Made by a program: the position numbers and the translations under genes. From contig OZ038379.1 in the NCBI GenBank assembly GCA_964036045.1, positions 7,688,001 through 7,752,000 on the forward strand: a stretch of 64,000 bases of DNA, written 5' to 3'. The stretch's first letter is position 1. The number at the start of each line of letters is the position of its first letter. The notes below the pieces were generated by a model. The model was not told where the DNA came from and did not search any database. It saw nothing but the letters and a program-made list of their open reading frames with translations. The stretch comes from Eutreptiella sp. 'Long Island Sound 2002'. Its lineage: Eukaryota; Protista; Euglenida. Shown one piece after another: positions 889-21,800 of the stretch.

Positions 889-1708
889 GTACAGTGGGGG
901 CTTTTGATTGGTGGTTTGGCTCTCGTCAATGCCAGAAGGGCCTCAGAGCCAAGGCAGGTGGAAAATTGCCCCGGGGGGGGGGGGGGGGGGGGGGGGGACA
1001 AACCCGGGGGGAGGGGGGGGGGTGCGAGTGGGGGCTCTTCGGTCAGGGGCCTTGAGTTTGGCCTTCTTTTGGCAAAATATGTTGCAATTTATTTTCATGG
1101 AAAAGGGGGCACATGACCACTTTTCTGACGCCCCTCGGCGCGCTGATTCCCAAAAAGCCAGTTTAATTTTTTTTGGTTTTGGTCCCCATGTCGGTCATGC
1201 AGACAGTCTACCCCCGTGATGGCCTGACAGAAGAGCCCACACCGCCCCTTTAATGTTTTGGTCGACACAACCCACCACCGATGGAGAAACAGAAACGGCG
1301 TACCAAAACAGCGGCTTGGTGGACCTTCACCCAAGGAAAGGGAAGGGAAGGGCAGCGAATGGCGATCGGCCAGTCCGCGCCGCCAGCTGCAGACGAGAAC
1401 AACAAATCCAAGGCGACATGCCAGATCCCCCCTTGGGGGTGGGGTCTTGAAAAAGGGGCTCATATGACCCCTCCCCCCCCCATGGAGCAATTTTCCACCC
1501 ACCCAACCACTGTGCGTTGCCCGGCGGCTGCCATGGACTGACTGCACACCACCGCACGCCTCCATCCTGAAATGGCTAAACACATCCCCTGAGCGCTCCA
1601 TTGACGCACATGCTTCCATGCAACAGGCACAACTTAAGCACTTTTTGAACCCCGTGCTCCATGCCCATGGGGAGCAGCAGGTCTGCCAATGGGGGGGACA
1701 CGTGTCAG

Positions 1709-1775
1709 ACATGCCACAGCCCGAGCGGGTGTGGCATGGGCCTGTGGGGCAATGGAGCGGATGAAGGTGCAGCGG
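1709..1775 (+). CDS. Putative internal exon of mitochondrial carrier gene
   Basis: Acceptor gtgtcag|1709 and donor cgg|gtggtg. Encodes (G)HATARAGVAWACGAMERMKVQR, with a degenerate Px[D/E]xx[K/R] motif (AMERMK). Phases are compatible with both neighbouring exons. Confidence 0.45.
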
Positions 1776-2438
1776 GTGGTGACTGGTCTGTGGGATCTTC
1801 CCCCCCGGACTTGTGTGTGTACTTGAAATGCTCCGAATGAAGTGGGGGATTCAGAAAGGCCATCAAGACCCGAATAACTCCCCTTCCACCACCCTTCCCC
1901 CCTCCAGACCCCCCTGCTCACACTGCGTGGGTTGGGGCCCGCAACTGAGCCGAACGCCCCCCCCCCCCCTGGTCTCAGCAGTTGGGGGACAAGTCTGAAG
2001 GCGACAAAACGGGAGGGACAGATGCGGCTGGGGCGGAACGAAGTGGTCATTTCACAGCAGGGAGTGGGCCAGTTGACTCCCCTTCTGCTTTGTACGCACT
2101 TGTTTGGGTTTTCAGGGGGCAATTAACAGTGGGGAAATGCGTGTCCAACCCGCAGGGACCGCTTTTGCAACCGCTCTTGAATCCCCCCTCCTGCAAGCTC
2201 TTTCCCCCTCAAGCGCATCCCTGCAGGGAACCTCCACTTGTTTGCCACAAAAGAATCAAAAGAACTCTCCCTCTGTCAGGCCAGCAGCCATTCCAACGCC
2301 TGTGGCCCAGCGGGGACGCCCTGCCCAACGCCTGGGGTGTGGTGAGCGTGGGATGCATGGATGCTGTGGCCAGATCTGCTTCTGCCTGTTGTGCCCAAAC
2401 TCGCCATCCCAGTGAGACTGTGGGCTGTTGCTGTGCAG

Positions 2439-2621
2439 GACGGTTTCAGCAAAGAACCGGACGACACCGGCGGCAACGTGGTGGCTGTCATGCAGGACAT
2501 CTGGCGCACGGAGGGCCTTAGGGGGTTCTGGCGCGGCGTGGTGGCCGGCAGCATCTACTACAGTGCATGGGCATGCCTGTTCTTTGGGACGTACGAGATT
2601 GTGGCCGCTGTCGTTGTGTGA
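2439..2621 (+). CDS. Terminal exon of mitochondrial carrier family (SLC25-like) protein
   Basis: Acceptor ctgtgcag|2439. Encodes DGFSKEPDDTGGNVVAVMQDIWRTEGLRGFWRGVVAGSIYYSAWACLFFGTYEIVAAVVV*, containing the carrier signature (I..xEG.RGFWRG) and the last TM helix ending FFGTYE. Confidence 0.8.
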   Translation, partial: DGFSKEPDDTGGNVVAVMQDIWRTEGLRGFWRGVVAGSIYYSAWACLFFGTYEIVAAVVV

Positions 2622-2676
2622 GGTATGGGCCTGGCGAAGGATGTTGGGCGGTGCCCTGCCGGCTTTGAGGAGCGAG

Positions 2677-2835
2677 AAAATCACCTCGAAGAGAGGTTGG
2701 TAGATCAAGTGCAGGCGCAGGCGTCGTGTACCCCCACTTTTTGGGGCCGTTCACGAAGCATACCCCAAGATATGGTATCAGACGTCTAACCCCTTGTAAA
2801 ATCATCATTTTGGAACAGAAAATGATCCCCCCATC
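2677..2835 (+). repeat. Dispersed repeat starting CACCTCGAAGAGAGGTTG (homologous to 33003-33160)
   Basis: About 155 bp align by eye with 33003-33160, sharing tcacctcgaagagaggttg..tagatcaag..ggcg..catacccc..aaccccttgtaaaatcat. Confidence 0.8.
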
Positions 2836-3559
2836 AATTCTTCAATTTGGACCGCCATATCCCCCCATACCCGGGTCCCCCATTTTCGGGGGGGGGGGCT
2901 CTATTGACCCACCCCCCTTCCCCCTCCCCCCAGTTGAAAACCCGACGTCCCGACGTCCCTTTGCGTGTGTGTACTGCACCCTCTGCGTTGTGTGTACTTT
3001 CGTGTGTCGCCAGCCCCTCAAACAGTCCTTCAGGGGGGTCGGGAACTGTTGGTGGCGCACCAGCGGCGATCGATGGCCGGCAGCCACCCGCAAGTGGCAG
3101 CCCATCGGCGACGATTGGCCGGTAACTGCCGGTAGTGGGCCTTCCCATGCCCGGGGACTGTCCTTTGCAGACAGAGAGCAGTGGTTGCGGGCAGTCTGTC
3201 TGGACAATCCAGGCCCATGGCATCCTTGAGCCACATCACAGGGCCCGACACAGCACACGGCGGCAAGGCAGGGCACAGAGCCATCCTTAAGACCGAAGGA
3301 AACCCAACAAACAACTGCCGGCCTCTGGTGGCCTCCGCAGAGCCAGCCGGCGAGTAGCTGCTGTTGGTCATCAGCCAACTGGCGTCAGGTGACCATCACC
3401 TGCCGTCAGTTGGGCGCAAACCTCCGTCAGTTGGGCATCCACCACCATTGCTTAACCAAATCCGCCACAGATCACCTCTGGCCGTCCTTCATGAGAACAA
3501 CAGAAAAGTTCAATTGCCTTCAGCAAGGCACCTCGAAGAGAGGGAAAAAATGGATTTTC

Positions 3560-3985
3560 AAAAAAAACATTCAGCTGCCACTAAAAAGCCTAAACAATAG
3601 CAATTTTGGGGCTTTCGGGGAACCCATGGCGCGGGCTACATGGGCCTAGCAGCTACTACATGGGTCCCTATGGGTGCTCAAGGAGTTGTATTGTCACCAA
3701 ATGATCACCCAAACCCATCCCAGGGGTGACGGAACATTTTTGGAAAAAGTCGAAGTTTGAAATTTTTTCAGGTGACACTAAACAACCTGGACAACAGCAA
3801 TTTTGGCGCTTTTGGGCAGCCCATGACGCGGGCTACAGGGGCCTAGCAGCTACCATGTGGGTCCCTATGGCTGCTCAAGTACCTGTAATGTCACCAAATG
3901 ATCACCCAAACCCATCCCTGGGGCGATGGAACATTTTCGGAAAATCTCATTGAAAACTTTTCAGGTGCCACTAAACAAGCCTATC
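3560..3985. repeat. Tandem repeat, ~197-bp unit, ~2 copies
   Basis: ATGATCACCCAAACCCATCC occurs at 3701 and 3898. The CACTAAA anchor recurs near 3578, 3775 and 3969. Confidence 0.85.
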
Positions 3986-6900
3986 CAGCGCAAAAACGGC
4001 TGAGTCCTCAGCGGCAAGGGCCCATAGGGGGGGGATGGGGCGGGGTTACCCGGAGTTTGGACCCGCAACCCCGCCATGGATTAGGGGGTCGATATACAAG
4101 AAAAAATTGTTCAGGCCCCGGGTCCAAATCGACACACAGCAGCTGCAATACACAAAGAACTTCTGACCCCCAAACCCCAACCCACCGAAACTTGGGGGGG
4201 GTCTAGGAAAGGGGCTCCATTGACAGGGTCATTGACCAGTCACCAGCCGAAGGCCCCAAAGATTTCTAGGGGGCTTCAACGGTCCATTTCATTTGCGTTG
4301 ACTACAAGCAAACAATGATTTTTGATGACTCCAAAGATGCCATTTTCAATGTTTTCCAGTTTTGGGGTCCGGATGACCTCCGGGGGCTGGCGGGGCGGTC
4401 CCGCTTGGAGTTTTGGGCTCCCCTCAATTGAGCCCTTTTTTGGGAGCCCGGGAGGTGTCCGGCTTGGGGGCTCCATGGACCCTCCATGCCCCCCCCCCCC
4501 CCCATCCTACGCGCACACCCCAACCAATGATGTGTTCTGATGTGTGTTTGAGAGCACCGGAGGGCGTGGTGGTGAGCTATTCGTCCCATTCCTCCTCAAC
4601 ACAAGTAGGGGATGTGTACATTTGTACATTCAAAGTGCTCATAGTGAGTGGAACGGTGATTTCAAAGAATGCCCCCAAACCCAGAAGTGTGTTGAACCCC
4701 CCCCCCCCCCCACCGACCCGGATCACGTTGCAGATGTTGGGATCTAGAACTAAACGAAACGTCCCATGCACCAGTTGTTTTCGTGTTGTTTTTTTTCGCG
4801 TGCTGCCCACACTAGAATTGGAGCACGTTCCCCCAGACCCCCCCCCCCCCCCGCTATACGGAGGGGGGGGGATTGCATGGGCTAATATGGGTCAGATACG
4901 GCTCAAAATAGCTAGGAACAACTTTGGAAAAGTCAGGACGATGTTTGCAGCCCTGCTTGAGTGTCGGATGTGGGGGTGATGCACGTTGCACAGGCTCTTT
5001 GTGCCCTCGTCCCGGGCACATCCACGCTCGTGCAAAGTGCAGAATGCGGCATCAAGGGGCAAGGGGGGGGGGTGGGAAATGGGCATAAGTACAAACACTC
5101 AAACCGCGGACTTCCACTTCAATTACCCATGCCAATAGGGCATTGAAGAGTGTCAATATGGAAATAGCTTGCAAGCAATCCCCTTCATAATTATTTATCA
5201 CCGTCAGGTTGCCCATGCTATCCATGGTAGTCAAACATAGCACAAGTGGGTGAAACTTGGGCCAGTAGCCAGTTCGGGGGGGGGGGGATTCCGTGTGCAA
5301 AACTGTGGGTTCGGCCCCCCTGCTGCTCGGCGCACGTGCTAGGGTAGGGTTACCAGGGTCACGTGCAGGTCAAGAACTGGTCAAAAATGCCCCCCCCCCC
5401 CCCTGACACGCTCCCCCGCCACCCATGGGTAAAGGGACAAGCGAGGGGAGACAACAGGACAGGGCAGACCGCGCTTGCCGAAAACGGTGTAGAGCGCAGC
5501 AGAAGGAGAAGGAAAGGACAAGAGGGAAAGAATCATTGTGGTTGTTAGAAGCCTCTGTCAGGAAAATTAACCCAGCATGGACTCGGAGTGTGCATCTGGA
5601 TGCACCTGGTCAACGGCACGGGCAACCAGCCTGTCTCCGGGACAGCCGACCCTGAAGTAGTCAGTAGGCCCTGGGGCTTCATGGACGCCTGCCTGACGTT
5701 CTTGATGCATCGTGAATGGCTCGGCAGAAGAGTCTGGGGTGCGGTGGAGACACATGACGGGGTGTGCAGCAGTACAGCACCGCAGACGAGCGGAGGAGTA
5801 CAGGCAAATGTTTGTAGGGTTGTGAGTACTGCCGACAGTGCATGGACGCTTGTGCCTGTAGGCCACAGATTCTGGGACGCTGTGTGTCTGGTTTCGCATT
5901 GCAGATTGGTGCACGTCTGAAGCCGACAACCTTCATGCAGGCCACACTCTGCCTGCAGCGTACCATCTGCTTGTAGACGCACACCATTTGCTGCAGTGCA
6001 CCATCTGCCTGGGACAGCGTCCCTATTGTGAGCAGCTTGGCAGGTGTCATGGGGCAGGGCAACCCACCTCCTTTCGCATACTGGACCCAAATATGCCTCC
6101 TGGCGTAGGCTTGGCTGCCCACTTATCCTGCCATTTCCTCCTCGAACATCAGGGGCCTGGGCCGTATCAGGCTCCGGCCCTCCCTAAGACGAGGTGCTGG
6201 ACTGAGAACTGCAAGGTCGTGTGTTCCAATCCTCCAAGTGGGATGCCGCTGTGTGGCATGGGCCATGGGGCCGCGTGCTGGCTGGTTCACCAGCAATCGC
6301 CCTGCGCACCAACGCTGATGGCTAGTAATGGGACGCTCCCGAGCCCCGCAGGGCCTAGTGGTGCTCACAAAGGCACTGATATTGGAGGCCGTCGGCTGTG
6401 GTCGGGTTCCTGTCCGCCGCCGCCTTTACGCCACGGCATCCGCCAACCCAGAGTCAACGCTTTGAATAAAGCACTGCCCACTGGCCTGGGGGGTGCCTTC
6501 GACAACCAGAACCTCCCCTTGACCCATGCCCGTACCGATTTCCCTCTTTGATATGTGGGGCGCTTGCCATCTTTTGAGACGCTCTTCCCCTCTGACCCCC
6601 CCACCCCCCCACCCCCACGGTGGACTGGGCTGGGTGCCCCAAGGCCCTTGGCCTGGGCGCCCTAGTCCTGAGGGCCTGACTGCGTTGTCTGACCGTGTGC
6701 CTTCACTGCGCCGCAGTTGTAGTATCTCTTCTACTGTGATTTGAGGTGATGGTCGGTTGGTTGGTTGGGTCAGGCCCATCATGGGCCTCTTGCTCTGTCC
6801 CCCTTTTGTTTGGCAGCCACCTCTGGTGGGTGTCTTGCGGTGCCAGGCGGCTGAGGCAGGACCGAGGTACAAGAACGCCTGTGTCGTGTGCTCGTGTGAA

Positions 6901-9900
6901 CGAGGGCACGTTCCGCACTGGGACTTCTATGCACTGTACGATACAGTGGCTCTCTATGTGTCCCGCGAATTCACGGTTCCGGAGTTGCAACTATTTTGAT
7001 GAGTGTAGTGTGCTGTAGGGTGCTGCGCCTTGGGACAGGTAGGGATCACGGATACGCTGGAGTTCGGAGATCGCCCGAGCACTTTACCTTTACCTACCTT
7101 TACCACCTCTGGTGGGGGGGACCCCACTCTGCCATAGGTTCCCCCAGGTTCCCCCATCACGGGCGTATTCCTGGGTTCCCCCGGGGGCCCAGCCGTGTGA
7201 TTTGAGGTGAGTGGACCACATTTGCACAGTGTTTGATGGTTCTGTCCTCCGTACTAGTCCTGGTGCGCCTTGACCGCACACCATCCTCTTTCCTACCGCT
7301 TGGTACACAAAGCACCACCCGTTTCGGGTGATTGGCAGTTCAATGAGCAATCAACTCTGCGTGGCCGCCCACCGTGGCTTGCCCTACAGCCCTGTTCAGT
7401 TGGTGCAGTGGGCCCGTTCTATGGGGCCCCGTAAGGGTGGGCCCACAAGACTAACAACGCGACGGTGCACGAGAGGGGGAGGGGAGGGCGCGTGGGAAGG
7501 CACGCCGCACCACCCCCCACGCACGCAACATCACCAGGCCATTGCTTAGTGTGGCGCCCCCCCGGGGGGGGGGGGGGGTTGGCACAAGGCCTCGGTATCA
7601 GTACCGGGGGAGGGGGGTCAGAGGCCAAAAAAAGTTTCTGAAATTCCTTAAATGTGTCTCAAGTTTCTGGTCCCTTTAATAAATGTCATTTTTGGCCGAG
7701 GAAAATTTTTTTCATGTGGGTGGGTGGGTGGGTCGGCCCGGGCTGGCCAGGGCCCCAAACGCCCCCCCCGCCCCCCACGCCCCTGGGGTCACCAAGCAAT
7801 AGCCTGAACACCACACATGAATCAAGCCAGAAATATGCCCTGACCCCACCTGCACCCAATTCAACTCGCGACGCCGTGGAGCGACGGCTTCGGTGATGCA
7901 AACGAGCCCCATCGATAGACGCCGTCCGTGGGCGTCGGTTGTGGTGAGCTCTGCACAGCCCCGCCGAGGCCCTCTCTCTGAGCCGGTGGCCCCTGACTCA
8001 AAAGACAACGGCCTTACGGGCTACAGCCCCGAATTTTTTTGCTGCACAGAGATGTGTCGCCCGATCCCTATGTCTCTGCACAGGCTTTGGGGTCTCGACC
8101 GCAGTGTCCCCTTGAGGGGCACCACAAATCGTAGGCATCTGTGTGAAGAGCAGGGCCCCTCGTCTAGTGTGCCCTCTGGAGCACCAGCACCGCCGCGATG
8201 GCATTGTGGTGCTCCGATGTGGGACGTACCCAGGCCTACGCTTCTTCATCGGCGATGGAGGCTTTTTGAGAAAGTAAAAAAAAAGATTGCCACAGTGGCA
8301 CGGGCCATGGCAACACGTCTGCGCATTCCATCTAATCTGCGTAGGGTACAAGTGACAGACATTGGAAGGGGCGTAGGGCTTCAGAGGAGACCAACGCCAC
8401 CACCTTTGGCCCCTTCATCCCCAACATTGTGGGGTGTGTTTGGAGTGGCCCAGATGCCTCAGATGTGGGCTGGTCAGGTAGAACTGACAGACATGAGAGG
8501 GGATGTAGGGCCTCAGAGCAGGACCAACGGCACCACATTCGGCCCCTCCCCAGCTTTTAGGGTTTAGGTTTGCTGGAGTGGCCGATGTGCCTTGTGTTGT
8601 GTGGGGTGGTGCCCGACGCCGTAGTGGTCTGGGGTGCCAGCCAAACACAGGGGGATGCCAATGTAGTGTCCCAAAGCACTGCTAGCAAACGGCAAAGGAT
8701 TGCACGGAATGGGTACGGTTGTATGCCCACTCATATATGGGCCCACACACCCGCCGGGCCCCTGGGGCTGCTGGGCCCACTTTATGAAGACCCTCCACAT
8801 GATGATGATGAAAGCAAAAAAAAAAAAAGAAAACCGCAGCGCCTTGTTTTCCCCGACTGGGCATCGGATGGCACTATGGGCAGCCTGCAAGCCCCGGTGA
8901 GAAGGAGGTGGGGGAAGCCATTGGTGCCCACGGAGCATGTTGTGCATTGCATTGCGCAGGTTGAACCCCAATTATGATGAGGCGTGACCTGATCGTAGTC
9001 GGGGACTGAGACCTCATCGTATCGTGCCCCCCCTCCCCTTTGTCCAGGATACTGCTGGCATTCATTGAGGTTACGTGCTCTGCATGTGCGATGCCCGGGG
9101 TGACGACCCTCGTCGGTTTTGTGGCCAAGATATGGCTTGTCCAAGATGCGAAGGGCGTACATTTGGGACCTCATTTTCACTCGGTCCCGGTCTGTAGATG
9201 TGGGCGAGGATGCTCCGTCTGTGTGCATTTCCGGTCGTTCTGCTGAGTCACGGTGGTTCTGTTGTCATTTGGCGGACTGGCCTCCATCCAATTGGCTCGC
9301 ACTCGTTTTGTTGTGGGGCGATGGCGATGAAATATAAGTGGCGCTGGAGCCGGTTTCGTCCAAGTGCCTCGACGATGCGGTTTTGGCTGCCACGTGTAAG
9401 GTGCACCCCGCCGAAGATACAGGAAGTGTAAGTCGCGCAGTAATTTGGGCCCTGGCCGTATCTTGGACCAGGCGGCTAGGGGGCCGTGGGAATGGCATGG
9501 GCTCAGGCGGCATCGGCGTGGCCGTTCCCAGTCCGAGACCATGTGCAAACCCCCGCAGTTGGACGCTGATTCCCGCCCCCGTCAGCCGAGGCCCATCGAG
9601 GGCGGGAGTGCTGGCAGGAGACTGCCATAGGACTCGGACGGTTATTTACACTGCGACTGTAGCTCGGTCTGTCCTGTGGTGCTCACGACCTTCTGCGTTG
9701 CGGCGCCATACAACGAGGACAAAAGACAGGAAGAGTGAAGGGGCCCTGCCTACTGCCAGTTTGCGACTTTTTATTCCTGTCACCCTTCGCTGCTGCGCGC
9801 ATTTCTGGCTGCATTCCTGGCCTCCAAACTTGTTTTAGCTGTGGGTTAATCTATCGGAGTGGGCGGCGTTAGCAAAGTGTGGTGTCTGCGTCATGCCAGA

Positions 9901-14600: not shown

Positions 14601-16106
14601 TTTGCAGTGGTCTTGGGCCTGTGCAGGAATCGGCACCAAATGTCTGCAATGGAGAGGGATGGAACTCAGAGTCCTCGTATACAGGGGTGGGGCTATCAGT
14701 ATGCAATGAGATTCCTGGGTGTGTGCCACGGCAAAGTGAATGCCACAGAAGGGCATAGTGTGTGGCCTTGAGTGTTGAATAAGATTTAGCATCGTCCCTC
14801 CAGGAGTCAATGTGGAGAGCAAGCACAAGTGGCAAACCTGCAGCGGGTCTTATTTTGTGTAATGGGCGAAGCCAAATCAAAACTTGGGCCGTAGGGCCCC
14901 TGCAAGTTTTGAAGAATAGCATGGCGGGGCCTCCGGGGTTCATTGCAAAGACCGCCGATTCACCATGCCACACTTTGGCAACATGATCAGCACTTGTGCA
15001 ACCATGGGCAGTCACACTTTGCAGCACCATGAATTGGCTGATACTAGGGTGTTCCCATTAGACCGTCCACATATCCCACAAAGGGATCAATAAACCGCCC
15101 TGTTTTGCAATGCCATGTTTTTCCAGCCAAATGTCATGCATTTGCCCCACTGGTGCGAGATTGATTGGGGCCGGTCACCAATGAAAGTCCGCAACGTTTG
15201 AATTCTGTGTGAGTTTGGTGGTGCTGGTCCGAGTTAACAGTTTTTTTTTCCTTCGCTGCAGCTGCTGACAGCAAACCCATTCACCGCAATCGGAATGTTG
15301 TGGTGATGTTGGAGCGTTCCAAGTGGACTTCATGGAACCTGTGTACACCTCCACCTCGCACACCAATGAATATTTTGTGGCAAGAGTAACAAAACCCCAA
15401 ATGCTGAGCTGAGGCAGGGGGGGGGGGCAGATGGAGCGGGACCAGGTCTTGCACACCCCTTCCCATGAGCATATGCTCATTACCTCCTATTCATTCCTTC
15501 AATCATTCGTTTTCTCTCTAATGTGCTACAGTTCTGGTACGGGACACTAAAGGTCCATAAACCAGCCGGAGACCATGCAGGCCGCTTTGGTTTCATGGAC
15601 AGTGTACACACAACACTGCTCAATATGAGCTGTTGAGTAGACCAGGTGACTTTCTGGCCCCTCACCAAGGCATACTGTCCATCTTGAGCGTCTTGCGTAC
15701 CAGAGTACGGCAGACTGCCAGTCAGCACTCTCCTGGCTTTCAGGGACTGTCTGCCCTGCGTGCGGGCAACTGGCATAGTGCTGCCATGTGCAAAGCAAAG
15801 GCCAGTGGGGCGCACAGAGCGCATTTCCCACACAACAAAGTCCTTAGGCAAGTCACCAGGACCGAACGTGTTTGCAAGGACCCACGCATTTTCGGCTCAA
15901 TGCCCCCACTTCTTTGGTTCACCTCGGGGAAGATAGCCGCGGCTGCCGCCACATCGTTTCGGATCGAGGTTGCCGAAATTTGGGGGTTGAGGTTGGCTAA
16001 ATCCACTCGGCAAGGTCGGCACAATAGGATTGCCGGTCTCTGAGCCAAAGCCGCAACGCCCTCTTTGGTCGCATGCGGCTCACACATCCCTTGTCCGCAG
16101 GGCTTC

Positions 16107-16706
16107 ATGACGTCGGCTGCATCCTCTTCCGCATGTTCTGCGCCCCTTCTGCGGGCACCCCCTCAGAAGTGGGTGCTGGCCCTTCTTGCATGCGGGGGCG
16201 TGGGTGCCTCATGCTGGCTTGCATGCCGCGCCTACATGCAGAGGCGAGCCCACCTGGTGGCCGTCGAAAGGCAGCGCCGCATCGACGAGGCCCACAAGGC
16301 GGCGATGGACAAGGAGGAAACGGGCTACCTCGACCCGGAGACGGGGCTGTGGGTGTTCACCGCGCTGCAGCACCTGAACCGGGGCTACTGCTGCGGCAGC
16401 GGATGCCGGCACTGCCCCTACGAACACATGAATGTCCCGAGTGTCAAGAAGGCCCGGGAGGAGCGGGAGCAGGCGGCGAAGGTCGCAAAGGGGACCAAGT
16501 CCCCCATCTTCACCGGGACGGGGGACAAGGGCATGTCGTCGCTCGGCACCGGCGAGCGCAAGTCGAAGGGCGAGACCGTGTTCCAGATTATGGGCACCCT
16601 CGACGAGCTGAATGCGCAGCTCGGCATGGTGCGGTGCAGTGTGGCGAGGCACACGGGGTACACCCACAAGGACGGTGAGGCGCAGTACGCGAAACTGGTT
16701 CGGCAG
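16107..16706 (+). CDS. MMAB: Exon 1 of DUF5522-like/cob(I)alamin adenosyltransferase (PduO/MMAB-type) fusion
   Basis: ATG 6 nt after ttgtccgcag acceptor. Contains a hydrophobic helix (WVLALLACGGVGASCWLAC), a Cys-rich module (YLDPETGLWVFTALQHLNRGYCCGSGCRHCPY) and the PduO N-terminus (IFTGTGDKGMSS..GER..K...F...GTLDELNAQLG). Donor cag|gtgtga at 16707, phase 0. Confidence 0.9.
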
Positions 16707-17029
16707 GTGTGAGGGGGGCCACGCAAGGAGGCACGGAGGCTGGCGCGTGAAGGGGCGGGGGGTTACCTTCCCTGCCCCCCAAAGGGTAACTGCATGACGA
16801 TTCGGACCCTAATTATGGGGCACTGGTGCTGTCCCATGAGCGGCAGAGCATGAACGCAGCGAGTCTAGAGGAGTATTGCACATCCTGGACACAAAATGGC
16901 CGTGATGGGTTGACAGGAGTATCCCAATAATAACAGTGCACGTCCACGTCACCGGAGTCCAGGGAGGAGCTGTGGCACCAGCTGGGACTGGAGCCCATGC
17001 CGGACGCAGTGTTGGAGGTCCATTTTTAC

Positions 17030-17905
17030 GAGATATGTACGTGTAGGCGCATACGTATACGCGTTCACATGTATACGCGTATGCATGTATACGCGTATAC
17101 ATATGCGCCTATACGTATGCATGTATATGCGCATAGACGCATCTTCTAACATCATCTCTTTTTATGCAGTTTGTGTATTGGCGCATACGCGCGTACACGA
17201 TTGCACGCGTATACATATGCACGTATACTAACACCATGTCTATGTAGTCAGTTTGTGGATATGTGTACATGTTGCATGTACTGAGGCGCAGGGTAGGGGT
17301 CCGGCGGTCTGTAGTTTGTAGACACTGTGTACCACAAGTAGATGCGGCCTGCTAATTGTAGACACCATCAGCATTTGGAGACGCGAATAGAGGCGTCCCC
17401 AAAGCACAGGGTAACAGGGTAGCAACAGCATTTATCCGTGCACAGGGGTCCGGTGCTCTGCAGTTCGTAGGCACAGTGTGCCACAAGTAGACGCAGCCTG
17501 CCATTGTATGCATCTTCGGCACGTTGTACACCCCAAGTGACAATAGTCAGAAAATCAGTGTGCAGCAACAGCTTGGTTTCTGAGGTGGAGGGCATGCAGG
17601 CAACCTTTGCATGACAATCTTGGGGTTCCTGAGTTCCATGGCACATGTTGCATATTTTCGGATTTTCGGGGGTTTGGGGGGTTTTGTCAATTTGGGCATG
17701 TTCAGTGCACTGATGGTTTGCACACACCCCATATCACCATGGCGTCAGTATGCGCAACCTGTTCGCATATAGACAAAATCGCTATGTTGACATGGTGTTT
17801 ATATACGCGTATACGTATACACGCGTGTACGTATACACGCGTATACGCATATATGTACATCCACGTATACGCGTATATGTACGCACGTATATGCGTATAC
17901 ACACA
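17030..17905. repeat. Intronic foldback element with alternating purine-pyrimidine arms
   Basis: AACACCATGTC (17230) and GACATGGTGTT (17789) form a perfect inverted pair embedded in longer degenerate arms of TATACGCGTATA-type sequence. The loop holds a ~150-bp-period direct repeat (ccacaagtaga at ~17332 and ~17482). Confidence 0.7.
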
Positions 17906-18462
17906 GCCCTCATTTTTTATTTGTGCTCATGTCATGTTGTGTCAGCACAACAAAAGGAGGGGGGGTGATGACCATCGTCGGATGATGGCTAAGTGCCATG
18001 ACCCCGTCATACGGTCATTTTTCTGAGGCACGATTTTTGCGGTCAAGAATGTAAGGTGACGTCGTTGTGTGCAAATTGTGGAGGGAAAGAGGTCCAGAGA
18101 TCACAAACTCTGCACGTTTCAGGCCCTCCTTTGTCATACCATGGGTCAGAACAGCTTTGTCCAAGTCTGGTGACCTCTTCATATCATTGTTGCCTGTTTT
18201 TGCCCCGGCTTACCATGCCTACCCCCGGAGGACCAGACAGGGGTTTGGCTCTTGCCCCGTCAACCGCCATTCCCTGACGGTTGCTGGCTCCTTTGTGTCG
18301 GTTCCCCACAAACCCTAGGGTCTGGCCTGGTGTCATACACCAACCCCCCAGTGTCTGGAAGTCAGTTTGGAGTCTGGAAAGCGGACCCCTCGTGTTGCGG
18401 ATGTGTCACGTCAGCTCACCCCACGCGCCCACCTCCACTCGTCTTGTGTTTCCACTGTGCAG

Positions 18463-18831
18463 CTTGAACATGTGCAGCACCTTGTGTTTGATGCCGGTTC
18501 TTGCATGAGCAGCCCAGCAACGTTCGAGGCAGACAACGTGTCGCTGCTGGAAGGCTGGATTCGCGACCTGACCGAGTACTGCCCCAACATCCACGGCTTC
18601 ATCCTGCCGGGGGGCAGTATTGTCACCTGCCACCTCCACGTGGCCCGCACTGTTTGCCGGCGCGCAGAGCGCTGCGCTGTGCAGCTCAACAGTGAGCAGT
18701 CCGTGGACGCAGCTGCGCGGAAGTTCATCAACCGCCTCAGCGATTTCCTGTTTGCTGCAGCGCGGCTGACAGCCTACTTGGATGGCACGGCTGATGTGCT
18801 GGTGCGGAGAAAGGCAGTCTGGGAAGATTAG
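18463..18831 (+). CDS. MMAB: Exon 2 of DUF5522-like/cob(I)alamin adenosyltransferase fusion
   Basis: Acceptor ttccactgtgcag|18463, phase 0. The join reads LVRQ|LEHVQHLVFDAGS (the IQxxLFDxG motif), followed by FILPGG, HVARTVCRRAER and FINRLSDFLFAAAR, then a stop. About 322 aa in total. Confidence 0.9.
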   Translation, partial: LEHVQHLVFDAGSCMSSPATFEADNVSLLEGWIRDLTEYCPNIHGFILPGGSIVTCHLHVARTVCRRAERCAVQLNSEQSVDAAARKFINRLSDFLFAAARLTAYLDGTADVLVRRKAVWED

Positions 18832-21800
18832 GTAGGGGCTGCAACAGACCTGTTGCACACACCAGGAATGGAGGCCCATGAGTACGTGGGTTGACTTGGA
18901 AGATCACGTTCGCAAGGTACAGATGCGCTGTTAATTATTGCGGTCTGTTTGCGTTGTATTCCATACGACTGGACCTGCAGGGCCCACATCACGCTCCCAC
19001 TTGGGCTGGTTTTGGAGTGGTTTTTGGTTGCTCGGCCTACTTGTATGTGGCTGTCTACTGTCGCTGCTACTGGTGGTGGTGCTGCTGCTGTTGCTAACAA
19101 CAGCAGCAGCAACAACAACCATAGCAACAAAAATGAGTTGGAAAGTCTCGGAAACTGCAAAGGCGCCGTGCCGCTCCCAACCGTCCTGAATGGTTTGCCA
19201 ACAATCTTGGGTGAGCCACTTGCTTCAAGATTGTTGCACTGAGCCGTGTTGATGATAATTCTGCTTTGGCCCGTATGAACTCACCTAAACCGCAAGTGGT
19301 TCATTCTCCATCCCTGACCTGACCTCAAGGGTATGTTGACTTAATTAATTTGGATGTCAACTAAGACTAGGTGTCGACTGAGGGGTGTCTTTGCGCGTAG
19401 TGCCCATGCTGTGCAAATTTTTAAGACTGCAGTCAGTACGTATACCCTTTTTCCCCACGCAGTGAGGCGTCATCAGGACTGAAAGGGTGCCGATATGTGG
19501 AGAGTGCCTTCAGCCTGATCCATTGCAACGTGCAGCTCCGCACGATATGCGATTCTCGGTGGCAATCAACAGGAAACCCGGAAACTCGGTGCCACCAACC
19601 ACCAGCAGGCAGCCACAACTGGCTCCCAGCACACAGTTTATGTTCTCTCACTCACATGTGACAGAATGGGGAATGTGCTCGATGGAACCGCAGCCAGCAT
19701 TTTGCTTAGGCCACGGACAGGGAAGCTCAGGCAACACATGAACCAAGACAGGAATGCCGACTGCGGAATTGTCTCCGTCTATGAAATTTGTAAATGTGCA
19801 AAAATACGATAACCAAATGAAATGGCTGAAGTGGGTTTTTTTTCATCCAGAAAAGAGTGTCAAGAGACCCATGAATTCAACCACAGGAATGCACTGAATA
19901 GCGCCAGGGATACAGGCAATCCACCGGCAAACGCATGGGGCTCTCTCTGATTCAGTTCCGCTCCTACAGCCTGGCACAGTAATTTAAGATTTTTAGACGC
20001 GCTCGCAGTGCGCTCGCAGTGCAAGGGTTTGCCCAAGCGCGGACCGATCTCTCTGGATCTCATGAACATCAGGCATGTTACCGTGTATAGTTCCATGCAT
20101 CGTTTCTTGGAGTGCTGAGGCATACTGACCACCGCCTGCTCTGGGTCTGGCGAGAGGTGTGCTGGCGTGTGCCAACCTCAGTGGACTGGTACACCCTTTC
20201 TGCTGACCGGAGCACACCTCGGCAGATCCTGTAAACGCCTCTCCAGACCTGTGCACCCCTGTGCCTTTCTGCGTATGCCCAGTCTGATGCACCGCTCTTC
20301 AAAGCAACACTCTGGTCTGCATACCGCCCTCAAGATGGCCTTGGGTATGATGCATTGCGCTGTGCAGCTCTGCGTGCGATGTGTTTCGCGGGGGTACTCA
20401 TTAGGCAGCCCCTTGAACATGGGTGCCATCAACCTGGCGTCCAGCCGGCGGACACAACCAGCCGACAGCACACAGTTTTCTTGTCCCTTTCCAGGGTCCT
20501 TGGGAACGTGCAGGGGGGTCCCTAAGGAGCCCCCCCCCCCCCCCCAACACGCACCTTGTGCACCGTCGGGTTTACTGCTAATCTCCGTCGGTCCACCGCC
20601 AACTGCCGTCGGTTAAGCGCCGGACTCTGTTTGCCCCCTTTTGCCCTTCAGGGACCCCCTCCTCCATCCTTTTCAGAAGCACAGTGTACATGAGGCCTGG
20701 TACACACCTACACCGGTGCCGTGCAAGTTGTATCACCACTTGCGTCCGAGCATCGTGCAAGCACCGGCTCTCCCTCCCACACGCCTGCACAGCCCTCCCT
20801 CCAGATGGCCAGATCTCCACAATGTCAACCCCCATGGCAGTGACCTGCACCGCCCATCCCACCCACTTTGTGTGCATGTGATCGGAGCGGCTGCACCTTG
20901 GTGACCAGGGGCGCATCCCAATGGTCAACATGCATTACAGAAGCCCCCACCCACCCACCCACCCACCCACTTCCCCACCCCTCCCTGAACATCCCCCTTC
21001 AGGACTCCTCCCTTTCCATGGGTTTTTATGGTGTATTGCTTTATCTAGTCCGTTCCTGGCCACGGCTGCAGCTTGTTGCCTTGCGCGGAGCATGTCATTA
21101 CGCTCTGTGTTTTTCGGTACAGAGACAGCAGATGCATGCCATACCGCGCCGCAAGTGCACATGCGCCGCACGAGAAATCGGACAGCAGCCATGCAATGGC
21201 ATGCCACGAAGAGTGCTCAAGGATCCATGGCCCTCAGGCGATGATGATATTGCGGTACATCCTGATTCTGGAACATGGGCTCATCACCTGAAAACACAGT
21301 AAAACGAAGCTGGCTCCCTGTACATTCTCATCGTGCCGACCAGGGCAATTGTGCGCAACCTGATGCCGAAACCCTCTTCCAACCCCGGCTATGTGTGCTG
21401 TTTGTGTGTGCAGATGGGGCATGTGGTGCATGCGTGTAGAAGGGACAGCCAGCATCTGGAGATACATGAGTCCAGGCAGCAGTTTTGCAGCTTTGCTATT
21501 GTTGGTGCAGTGCCCTTGTCAGAGATGGGTGTATCGCCCCCGCTTGCACCCCTAACAGCTGGATAGCCCTACGGGCGATGCAAGGGTGGTGTATTCACCT
21601 GGTGGTGTAGCAGTCTGGACGATGAAAGTACTGTTCGACCAAAGAGGTGACGGCAGGCCGCAACAGCGTTTCTGAGTGTGTAGAACCATGGTGTGACAAG
21701 TAGTGTCAGAAGAAGTGCCATTTAACCAGGGAGTGCCAGCATGGCGCCACAAACCACTGGGGATACTGTCAATTAATGCATGCAACAAAAAAAATCGTCA

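Follow-up and report, generated by a model that had tools for sequence, protein, structure and literature searches.

A DUF5522 (C1orf53-like) module joined to the cobalamin adenosyltransferase of a euglenid: a candidate metal or redox accessory of B12 enzymes

In a 64,000-nucleotide stretch of DNA from the euglenid Eutreptiella sp. 'Long Island Sound 2002' (assembly GCA_964036045.1, contig OZ038379.1, positions 7,688,001 to 7,752,000 of the forward strand; hereafter the window, in whose numbering all positions are given), we identified a real, expressed, spliced-leader trans-spliced gene whose 322-residue product joins a hydrophobic N-terminal segment, the 48-residue Cys-rich domain DUF5522 (PF17653, C1orf53-like) and a complete PduO/MMAB-type cobalamin adenosyltransferase. 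The transferase itself is an ordinary family member, and its N-terminal DUF5522 extension is an undescribed variant that occurs in several protist lineages. We tentatively propose, at somewhat less than an even chance, that DUF5522 is a four-Cys metal or redox accessory of B12 enzymes, which in this protein would be a built-in relay of reductant or a site that handles the cofactor. The gene is firmly established, and the hypothesis on its function is backed by several partly independent associations and tempered by the negative context of the bacterial DUF5522 genes. The features of the gene up to its stop codon are as follows.

16099..16100, + strand: trans-splice acceptor AG; mRNA body from 16100/16101, 6 nt ahead of the start codon (genome ...ccgcag/gg, the slash marking the splice)
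16107..16706, + strand: exon 1 coding, 200 codons; N-terminal segment, DUF5522, linker and first third of the adenosyltransferase
16170..16226, + strand: hydrophobic segment, residues 22-40; Kyte-Doolittle mean 1.82 over 19 residues
16290..16433, + strand: DUF5522 (PF17653, C1orf53-like), residues 62-109; Pfam E 8.3e-24, profile positions 1-48 of 48
16389..16421, + strand: core motif CCGSGCRHCPY, residues 95-105; four Cys within 9 residues
16434..16505, + strand: 24-residue linker separating the Pfam matches of DUF5522 and the adenosyltransferase; predicted local distance difference test (pLDDT) 51-76 in the model of database protein P0002
16506..16706, + strand: adenosyltransferase part 1; profile positions 1-49 plus a lineage-specific insertion, with the GDKG nucleotide-binding stretch
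16707..18462, + strand: intron 1, 1756 nt, GT..AG, with high-copy repeats inside
18463..18831, + strand: exon 2 coding, 122 codons plus TAG (18829-18831); adenosyltransferase profile positions 58-170

The open reading frame (ORF) begins with the ATG at 16107 and comprises 200 and 122 codons, joined in frame to give 322 amino acids (aa). Exon 1 ends at 16706 and is followed by GTGTGA, and the intron closes with AG at 18461-18462. Three RNA runs (X1, X2 and X5; two estuary metatranscriptomes and one 2015 run) were placed over the region as contigs, and the contigs of all three carried a joint from 16702 to 18459 which, with its 4-base ambiguity, equals 16706 joined to 18463, with GT..AG ends and 1756 bases skipped, while the sequence of the intron was present in DNA run X13. 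These results bear out the preliminary description of this locus, made from the sequence alone, which had proposed a single spliced ORF of about 322 aa and whose coordinates were all correct. The three runs, from different studies, yielded one continuous form of RNA contig that passes from the leader tail through both domains and beyond the stop codon. No internal leader site or stop between DUF5522 and the transferase was found in the RNA contigs, from which rare isoforms could escape, and the internal trans-splice or stop separating the two domains that the preliminary description had named as a refutation did not occur in them. The RNA contigs of X1 and X5 start at 16100, behind the non-genomic TTTTTTTC / ATTTTTTTTC, a tail that we take to be the 3' end of the euglenid spliced leader (...UUUUUUUUCG) and that fits spliced-leader trans-splicing. 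Since the mRNA body starts at 16100/16101, the first AUG is the one at 16107, and the hydrophobic N-terminus belongs to the product. The database protein P0002 (279 aa) is 100% identical and contains the junction KLVRQ/LEHVQ; it begins only at Met44, is identical to the spliced product from there on, and was used for whole-domain profile scores and for the structure model.

The two exons were searched separately against Pfam, whereby exon 1 matched Cob_adeno_trans with residues 134-182 (profile positions 1-49 of 171) and exon 2 matched positions 58-170 of 171 (E 3.6e-29). P0002 matched PF01923 over positions 1-170 of 171 with E 3e-46 and 158 bits, the cut-off being 24, which amounts to one complete domain, and it matched DUF5522 as well. 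The NCBIfam model PduO_Nterm (TIGR00636) also matched both exons, with 31.7 and 105.3 bits; neither score reaches the cut-off of 108 bits, which is set for the whole domain, since each exon encodes only a part of it. Part 1 was aligned to residues 3-56 of the human MMAB chain, with PIFTGTGDKGMSS lying opposite KIYTKTGDKGFSS of human MMAB (the T-x-x-G-D-x-G nucleotide-binding stretch). Exon 2 carries FILPGG, RTVCRRAER (ARTVCRRAER) and NRLSDFLF; FILPGG and ARTVCRRAER align to the same stretches of 2zhy, and the human MMAB counterpart reads ILPSGG...CRAVCRRAER. In the literature on the human and Lactobacillus reuteri enzymes, the Phe of FILPxGG is the residue that removes the lower ligand and so yields four-coordinate cob(II)alamin, and R-x-x-x-R-R-x-E is the Arg/Glu cluster struck by patient mutations. 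A sequence search of solved structures matched human MMAB and PduO enzymes, and with the AlphaFold2 model of P0002 (mean pLDDT 81) Foldseek returned human MMAB first and then PduO structures (E 4e-10, template modelling (TM) score by target 0.8-0.9, 36-39% identity). Residues 134-322 make up a full-length representative of the family of human MMAB and bacterial PduO, with the same helical-bundle fold and with GDKG, FILPGG, CRRAER and NRLSD shared, so that the complete PduO/MMAB domain proposed earlier stands on its full-length profile match, its motifs and its fold. We regard the gene product as this organism's ATP:cob(I)alamin adenosyltransferase of the MMAB/PduO type and, from the conservation of GDKG, FILPGG, RTVCRRAER and NRLSDFLF, as presumably active. 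Enzymes of this type are homotrimers with active sites at the subunit interfaces. Unlike the present protein, the solved or characterised ones lack the hydrophobic segment and DUF5522, and they also lack the insertion that follows the first helix here; Salmonella PduO carries a C-terminal DUF336 domain instead.

Euglena is the classical B12 bioassay organism, and the transferase matters for its physiology because Euglena relies on adenosylcobalamin (AdoCbl) for DNA precursor synthesis and propionate metabolism. In Euglena, AdoCbl is needed by the methylmalonyl-CoA mutase of the mitochondria and by a B12-dependent ribonucleotide reductase (PMC3901258), and a passage of the same article credits the class II ribonucleotide reductase of Euglena, a 'eukaryote class II enzyme', to Torrents 2006. 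A PduO-type transferase, which may or may not correspond to the present gene, was detected in E. gracilis proteomics, where it accumulates in the dark and no extra module is mentioned (a 2025 article, PMC12267456).

The Cys-rich motif of exon 1, which had been recognised as characteristic of the DUF5522/C1orf53-like family, proved to belong to a full-length match to the Pfam profile (83.9 bits against a cut-off of 25 in exon 1) that keeps all invariant positions. Both the Y-x-DPETG-x-x-VFT hairpin and the G-x-CCGSGCRHCPY loop are present (residues 74-105). Over 45 aligned domains, Y, V and T, followed by C, C, G, C, R, H, C and P, were invariant, and S, G and Y of the loop were conserved in at least 90%; the loop motif was found in 69 of the 69 proteins recovered with exon 1 as the query. 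Phage copies vary in the loop (CKHC, CLNC), the four Cys and the Pro being kept as its hard core. As judged from these alignments, the loop is almost invariant from bacteria to vertebrates. The AlphaFold2 model of the domain (pLDDT 89.9) predicts a helix, a tight beta-hairpin, a second helix and the Cys loop, and this predicted fold matches the ESM Atlas DUF5522 clusters with TM 0.70-0.84. No relative of DUF5522 among solved structures was found by sequence, by Foldseek (best E 1.7) or by VIA-align (48,161 chains, best Z 2.1), and the same searches returned no structural relative with a bound metal; nothing usable came from a feature search of the ESM Atlas in which PF17653 was left out. The C-x3-C-x2-C-P spacing recalls cluster-binding motifs and CRHC recalls the CxxC sites of redoxins, both being resemblances only. 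The four Cys, with or without the His, may hold a metal or Fe-S centre, as the preliminary description had suggested for a built-in redox or metal-handling partner, or may form a redox-active thiol cluster. The hairpin Y-x-DPETG-x-W (16326-16358) is nearly the sequence of a designed chignolin-type mini-hairpin, and in the PDB the DUF5522 profile drew a single 'hit', a man-made protein in which YDPETGTW occurs.

The Oxidored-like N-terminal domain (PF09791, OXLD1) has a CC-x-SGC-x-x-C-like motif in common with DUF5522. Its matches stayed below the 24-bit cut-off, with 16 bits (E 0.01) in exon 1 and 17.6 bits (E 0.003) in P0002, and covered 13-14 residues, which is the motif only; the rest of the domain is not alignable and the relationship is unproven. 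OXLD1 appears in a mitochondrial proteome paper. Free-standing DUF5522 proteins measure 115-195 aa in vertebrates (C1orf53), 70-90 aa in bacteria and 57-80 aa in viruses, and in contrast to the free-standing vertebrate C1orf53, the module is here covalently joined to a B12 enzyme. With vertebrate C1orf53 as the query, the matches listed were from vertebrates only, so that absence from B12-free lineages is not inferable from them. The 120 best C1orf53 homologues include mammals, turtles, alligator, lizards, amphibians and fishes and no bird, which could reflect either loss or an assembly gap.

The order DUF5522 then transferase recurs in the proteins P0003, P0004, P0005, P0007 and P0008 and at loci L169 and L170. 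P0003 and P0004 are 48-50% identical and are probably euglenid, P0005 is from the diplonemid Rhynchopus euleeides, and P0007, P0008, L169 and L170 are intronless single ORFs on eukaryotic contigs, with nucleoporin, IFT46, BCCIP and FAN1-type genes as neighbours. An ESM Atlas cluster with the same two domains has 68 members, 75% of them eukaryotic. A bacterial fusion was not found, the full-length fusions of the metagenome scan all lying on eukaryotic contigs, and in the viral scan no kept DUF5522 match extended into the transferase part. The preliminary description had suggested that this architecture is uncharacterised. In this respect it holds, since a search for DUF5522 by name found nothing in the searchable literature; the architecture is nevertheless not unseen, as it is already auto-annotated in databases. 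C1orf53 together with cobalamin or MMAB was likewise not found in the searchable literature, where C1orf53 turns up only in gene lists.

A second association with B12 comes from phages. The viral contigs contained at least 481 DUF5522 stretches, of which the best 80 loci (L088-L167) were taken and 77 clustered. DUF5522 stands directly after a reductase of ~618 aa in 74 of these 77 loci, and this reductase matches the Pfam 'B12-dependent ribonucleotide reductase insertion domain', phrog_367 and, as its best NCBIfam model, TIGR02505 (E 2e-78), the adenosylcobalamin-dependent ribonucleoside-triphosphate reductase (RTPR). A thioredoxin gene follows DUF5522 in 37 loci; elsewhere baseplate or unknown genes follow and the reductase-DUF5522 pair is kept. 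A second reductase lineage, ~26% identical to the first (TIGR02505 E 9e-99), showed the same gene arrangement, the module being present in 17 of the 22 loci whose reductases are at least 80% identical. The TIGR02505 matches of both lineages lie just under the curated cutoff. Reductases of the RTPR type are monomeric (PMC5704485), and those beside DUF5522 in phages are of this type. They also retain the C-terminal C-x4-C tail, and the idea that phage DUF5522 substitutes for a lost redox tail of the reductase was ruled out, the terminal C-x4-C still being there. The cassette reads DnaB helicase, RTPR, a DUF5522 protein of 57-80 aa, then thioredoxin or baseplate genes, and occurs in abundant uncultured phages with a GC content of ~0.33; examples are the reductase at L125:2733-4586, DUF5522 at L114:5007-5207 and thioredoxin at L154:5155-5415. 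PHROGs has no family for the small phage DUF5522 protein.

A third association comes from other fusions. DUF5522 is fused to 'helical backbone metal receptor' proteins of the TroA-like kind, for which BtuF is the best specific match (E 7e-18), and to Dph6-like PP-loop ATPases of ~275 aa, which are common in bacteria and algae. In two related genomes a PF01497 gene lies 18-28 bp upstream of the gene for a DUF5522-Dph6-like protein; in the bacterial operon L002:7038-8825 the PF01497 gene is followed by the DUF5522-Dph6-like gene after 18 bp. On a diatom-like eukaryotic contig (L181:3624-5906), the TroA/BtuF-like part, DUF5522 and the Dph6-like part stand in one 760-aa ORF, and the same combination forms an ESM Atlas cluster of 220 members, mostly from diatoms. 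The BtuF-like, DUF5522 and Dph6-like set constitutes a separate three-part system, itself uncharacterised. Further partners are uL14m (in nematodes), a type IX secretion system (T9SS) tail, a CWC Cys-rich domain and a cREC receiver domain. The uL14m-DUF5522 combination, a nematode ESM Atlas cluster of 50 members, could be a genuine fusion in mitochondria or else result from gene models that were merged. On viral contig L161:5019-5618, DUF5522 is fused to cREC_REC (cyclic-phosphate processing receiver), with a thioredoxin gene upstream. Extra N-terminal domains on DUF5522 in long high-GC bacterial ORFs were considered and rejected, these being stop-free extensions without any domain.

The case for DUF5522 as a B12 accessory thus rests on the company of three corrinoid-related proteins, a maker of AdoCbl, a user of AdoCbl and a BtuF-like binder, together with thioredoxin. 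A PduO/MMAB transferase depends on an external electron to reach cob(I)alamin, and in solved structures its N-terminal lid becomes ordered over ATP and the corrinoid. In the Eutreptiella enzyme the hydrophobic anchor or targeting segment would stand ahead of this ATP-binding lid together with DUF5522, which would be held on a flexible linker of ~24 residues. So tethered, the module could pass an electron to the enzyme-bound four-coordinate cob(II)alamin to form cob(I)alamin, or could otherwise handle the cofactor, and free-standing DUF5522, as in the phage copies near RTPR and thioredoxin or in animal C1orf53, might do the same job in trans. The proposed functional counterparts of DUF5522 in electron supply are cob(II)alamin reductants of the PduS, flavodoxin and CobR types. 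There is no homology to these, which are flavoproteins or Fe-S flavoproteins of 150-450 aa; unlike them, DUF5522 has 48 residues and lacks any signature for binding flavin or nucleotides. A precedent for Cys-metal sites that assist in corrinoid adenosylation is EutT, an adenosyltransferase that requires a divalent metal ligated by Cys and His for activity; it belongs to an unrelated fold and family, and its metal site lies inside the catalytic domain and not in a separate module. As a working analogy we consider the Cys-rich domain (CRD) at the C-terminus of most class II reductases, which binds Zn and mediates electron transfer (Loderer et al. 2017, PMC5704485). It is likewise a short Cys-rich module attached to an AdoCbl enzyme, although no sequence relation was detected and the CRD has six Cys in spaced CxxC pairs.

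Several observations weigh against such a role. A scan of 43 bacterial DUF5522 loci (L001-L043) with Rfam at gathering thresholds revealed no cobalamin riboswitch, and unbiased neighbour clustering of 80 bacterial loci gave no conserved B12 neighbours. The bacterial neighbours are instead mixed and lineage-specific, including an outer-membrane barrel, an AAA ATPase, a multicopper oxidase, an amidohydrolase, an MFS protein, a nitronate monooxygenase and an SDR protein. The Dph6-like ATPase, uL14m, the T9SS tail and cREC are partners without an evident B12 link, and TroA-like proteins bind haem and siderophores too. Among the phages, most reductases of the first set are 78-100% identical, and the cassettes therefore stand for few independent events; the module was present in 0 of 56 more distant viral RTPR loci, a count by which we ruled out that RTPR is always accompanied by DUF5522. 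The single GenBank phage with DUF5522 (Microcystis phage MaAM05) has it beside purL/purF. Finally, four Cys in 9 residues are compatible with several chemistries (Zn, Fe-S, Cu or disulfide). The fusion had been read in the preliminary description as a 'Rosetta stone' link between this domain of unknown function and B12 cofactor synthesis. That reading gains from the recurrence of the fusion in protists, from the BtuF-like partners and from the two phage RTPR lineages, and it loses from the bacterial loci with their mixed neighbours and no riboswitch.

Among the bacterial neighbours, one ABC ATPase cluster spans bacterial phyla, which may be mere paralogy. In Gemmatimonadota the gene for the DUF5522-Dph6-like protein has a multicopper oxidase upstream and an amidohydrolase downstream, a lineage-conserved synteny (L003, L011, L016, L026-L028, L032, L040, L044, L046 and L049) that hints at copper as a candidate metal of the module.

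To our knowledge, the source of the electron for the reduction of cob(II) to cob(I) in eukaryotic PduO/MMAB-type transferases has never been settled; a mitochondrial enzyme dedicated to this step is not known from animals, for which free flavins or surrogate flavoproteins have been invoked. A wider proposal would be that DUF5522/C1orf53 is a missed dedicated partner of AdoCbl enzymes, namely an electron or thiol donor or a cofactor-handling factor for the conversion of cob(II)alamin to AdoCbl by PduO/MMAB that keeps B12-dependent reductases loaded, and that human C1orf53 is a mitochondrial B12-pathway gene with a candidate cob(II)alamin reductase function. We regard this wider proposal as doubtful. 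The fusion in protists, the phage RTPR cassettes and the BtuF-like fusions nevertheless provide a concrete, testable hypothesis for the orphan human C1orf53, and a functional link for this orphan domain, which ranges from bacteria to human, is new to the searchable literature.

It seems unlikely that DUF5522 is a structural zinc docking module without a redox role, which would tether the transferase to a B12 client enzyme or a membrane partner for the direct hand-over of AdoCbl, or in phages would dock by itself. A small promiscuous module at the N- or C-termini of unrelated partners is what adaptors often are, the module adjoins the AdoCbl client RTPR in phages, and human MMAB hands AdoCbl directly to the mutase; however, the non-ligand residues G, S, G, R, H, P and Y are near-invariant too, which is unusual for a structural zinc knuckle with many partners, and all four Cys lie inside 9 residues rather than in two separated CxxC pairs. 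Improbable as well is a role as a generic accessory, of thiol/metal redox reactions or of nucleotide metabolism, that is not specific to B12; its fusion to the transferase and its place beside RTPR would then show no more than that both enzymes require reductant or take part in nucleotide metabolism. The thioredoxin gene next to DUF5522 in the 37 phage loci, the purL/purF surroundings in MaAM05, partners such as the Dph6-like ATPase, uL14m and cREC, the likeness of CRHC to redoxin sites, and bacterial copies with no riboswitch or B12 genes nearby in the loci examined would all suit it. Against it, three different corrinoid-related partners recur (transferase, BtuF-like binder and RTPR), the adjacency of reductase and DUF5522 outlasts downstream rearrangement in two reductase lineages, and an extra generic redoxin is not obviously needed, as the phage RTPRs have their own C-x4-C thioredoxin tail.

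We consider it quite improbable that DUF5522 is a corrinoid-handling thiolate, in which a Cys ligates cobalt (Co-S) and holds cob(II)alamin or passes it to the active site, as in MMADHC/MMACHC. Co-S ligation is known in B12 trafficking, fusions join the module to a B12-type binder as well as to the transferase, and it is tethered beside the N-terminal lid by which the corrinoid site is closed; yet 48 residues are few relative to a corrin, and the phage setting with thioredoxin fits redox chemistry better. That the fusion is an artefact of a wrong gene model, a chimeric assembly or separate transcripts is hardly credible, for although rare isoforms beyond the contigs are possible and P0002 starts only at Met44, three RNA runs give a continuous spliced contig, the intron is borne out by the DNA run, exon 1 encodes DUF5522 as well as the ATP-binding start of the transferase, and other eukaryotes have the fusion as an intronless single ORF.

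The hydrophobic segment at residues 22-40 exceeds, with its Kyte-Doolittle mean, the usual guide value of 1.6, and is flanked by 2 basic residues on the N side and by 5 basic and 3 acidic residues on the C side. It is a likely membrane anchor, or could alternatively be part of a targeting signal. Plastid targeting was thought unlikely, the DUF5522 helix following directly after the hydrophobic segment with no transit-peptide-like region between them. Gly/Ala-rich hydrophobic N-termini also occur in P0005 of Rhynchopus (1.52) and, weaker, in P0003 (1.07), while P0007, with a presequence-like start, and P0008, with nothing comparable, have no hydrophobic N-terminus; the anchor may be specific to Euglenozoa. 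The linker between DUF5522 and the transferase varies from 24 to ~120 residues across homologues.

Intron 1 carries a very high-copy repeat, with a DNA word depth of 1152-9117 at 17171-17504 compared to ~33 around it, and also contains GTATACGCGTATAC-like palindromic or tandem repeats, notable stretches being 17171-17504, 17030-17240 and 17780-17900. Behind the stop codon, two features of the 3' untranslated region (UTR) were delimited.

18832..19391, + strand: 3' UTR, first part; RNA contigs extend to 19391/19392
19392..20034, + strand: 3' UTR intron with non-GT..AG ends; loose ends of the X1, X2 and X5 contigs resume at 20030/20035

The 3' UTR is more than 1.4 kb long and includes a triplet-repeat stretch at 19060-19127 (GCT/GTT on the + strand, that is CAG/CAA-type). 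Two joints, 5-6 bases apart (19391 to 20035 and 19392 to 20030), were seen for its intron in the RNA contigs, as expected for a euglenid nonconventional intron.

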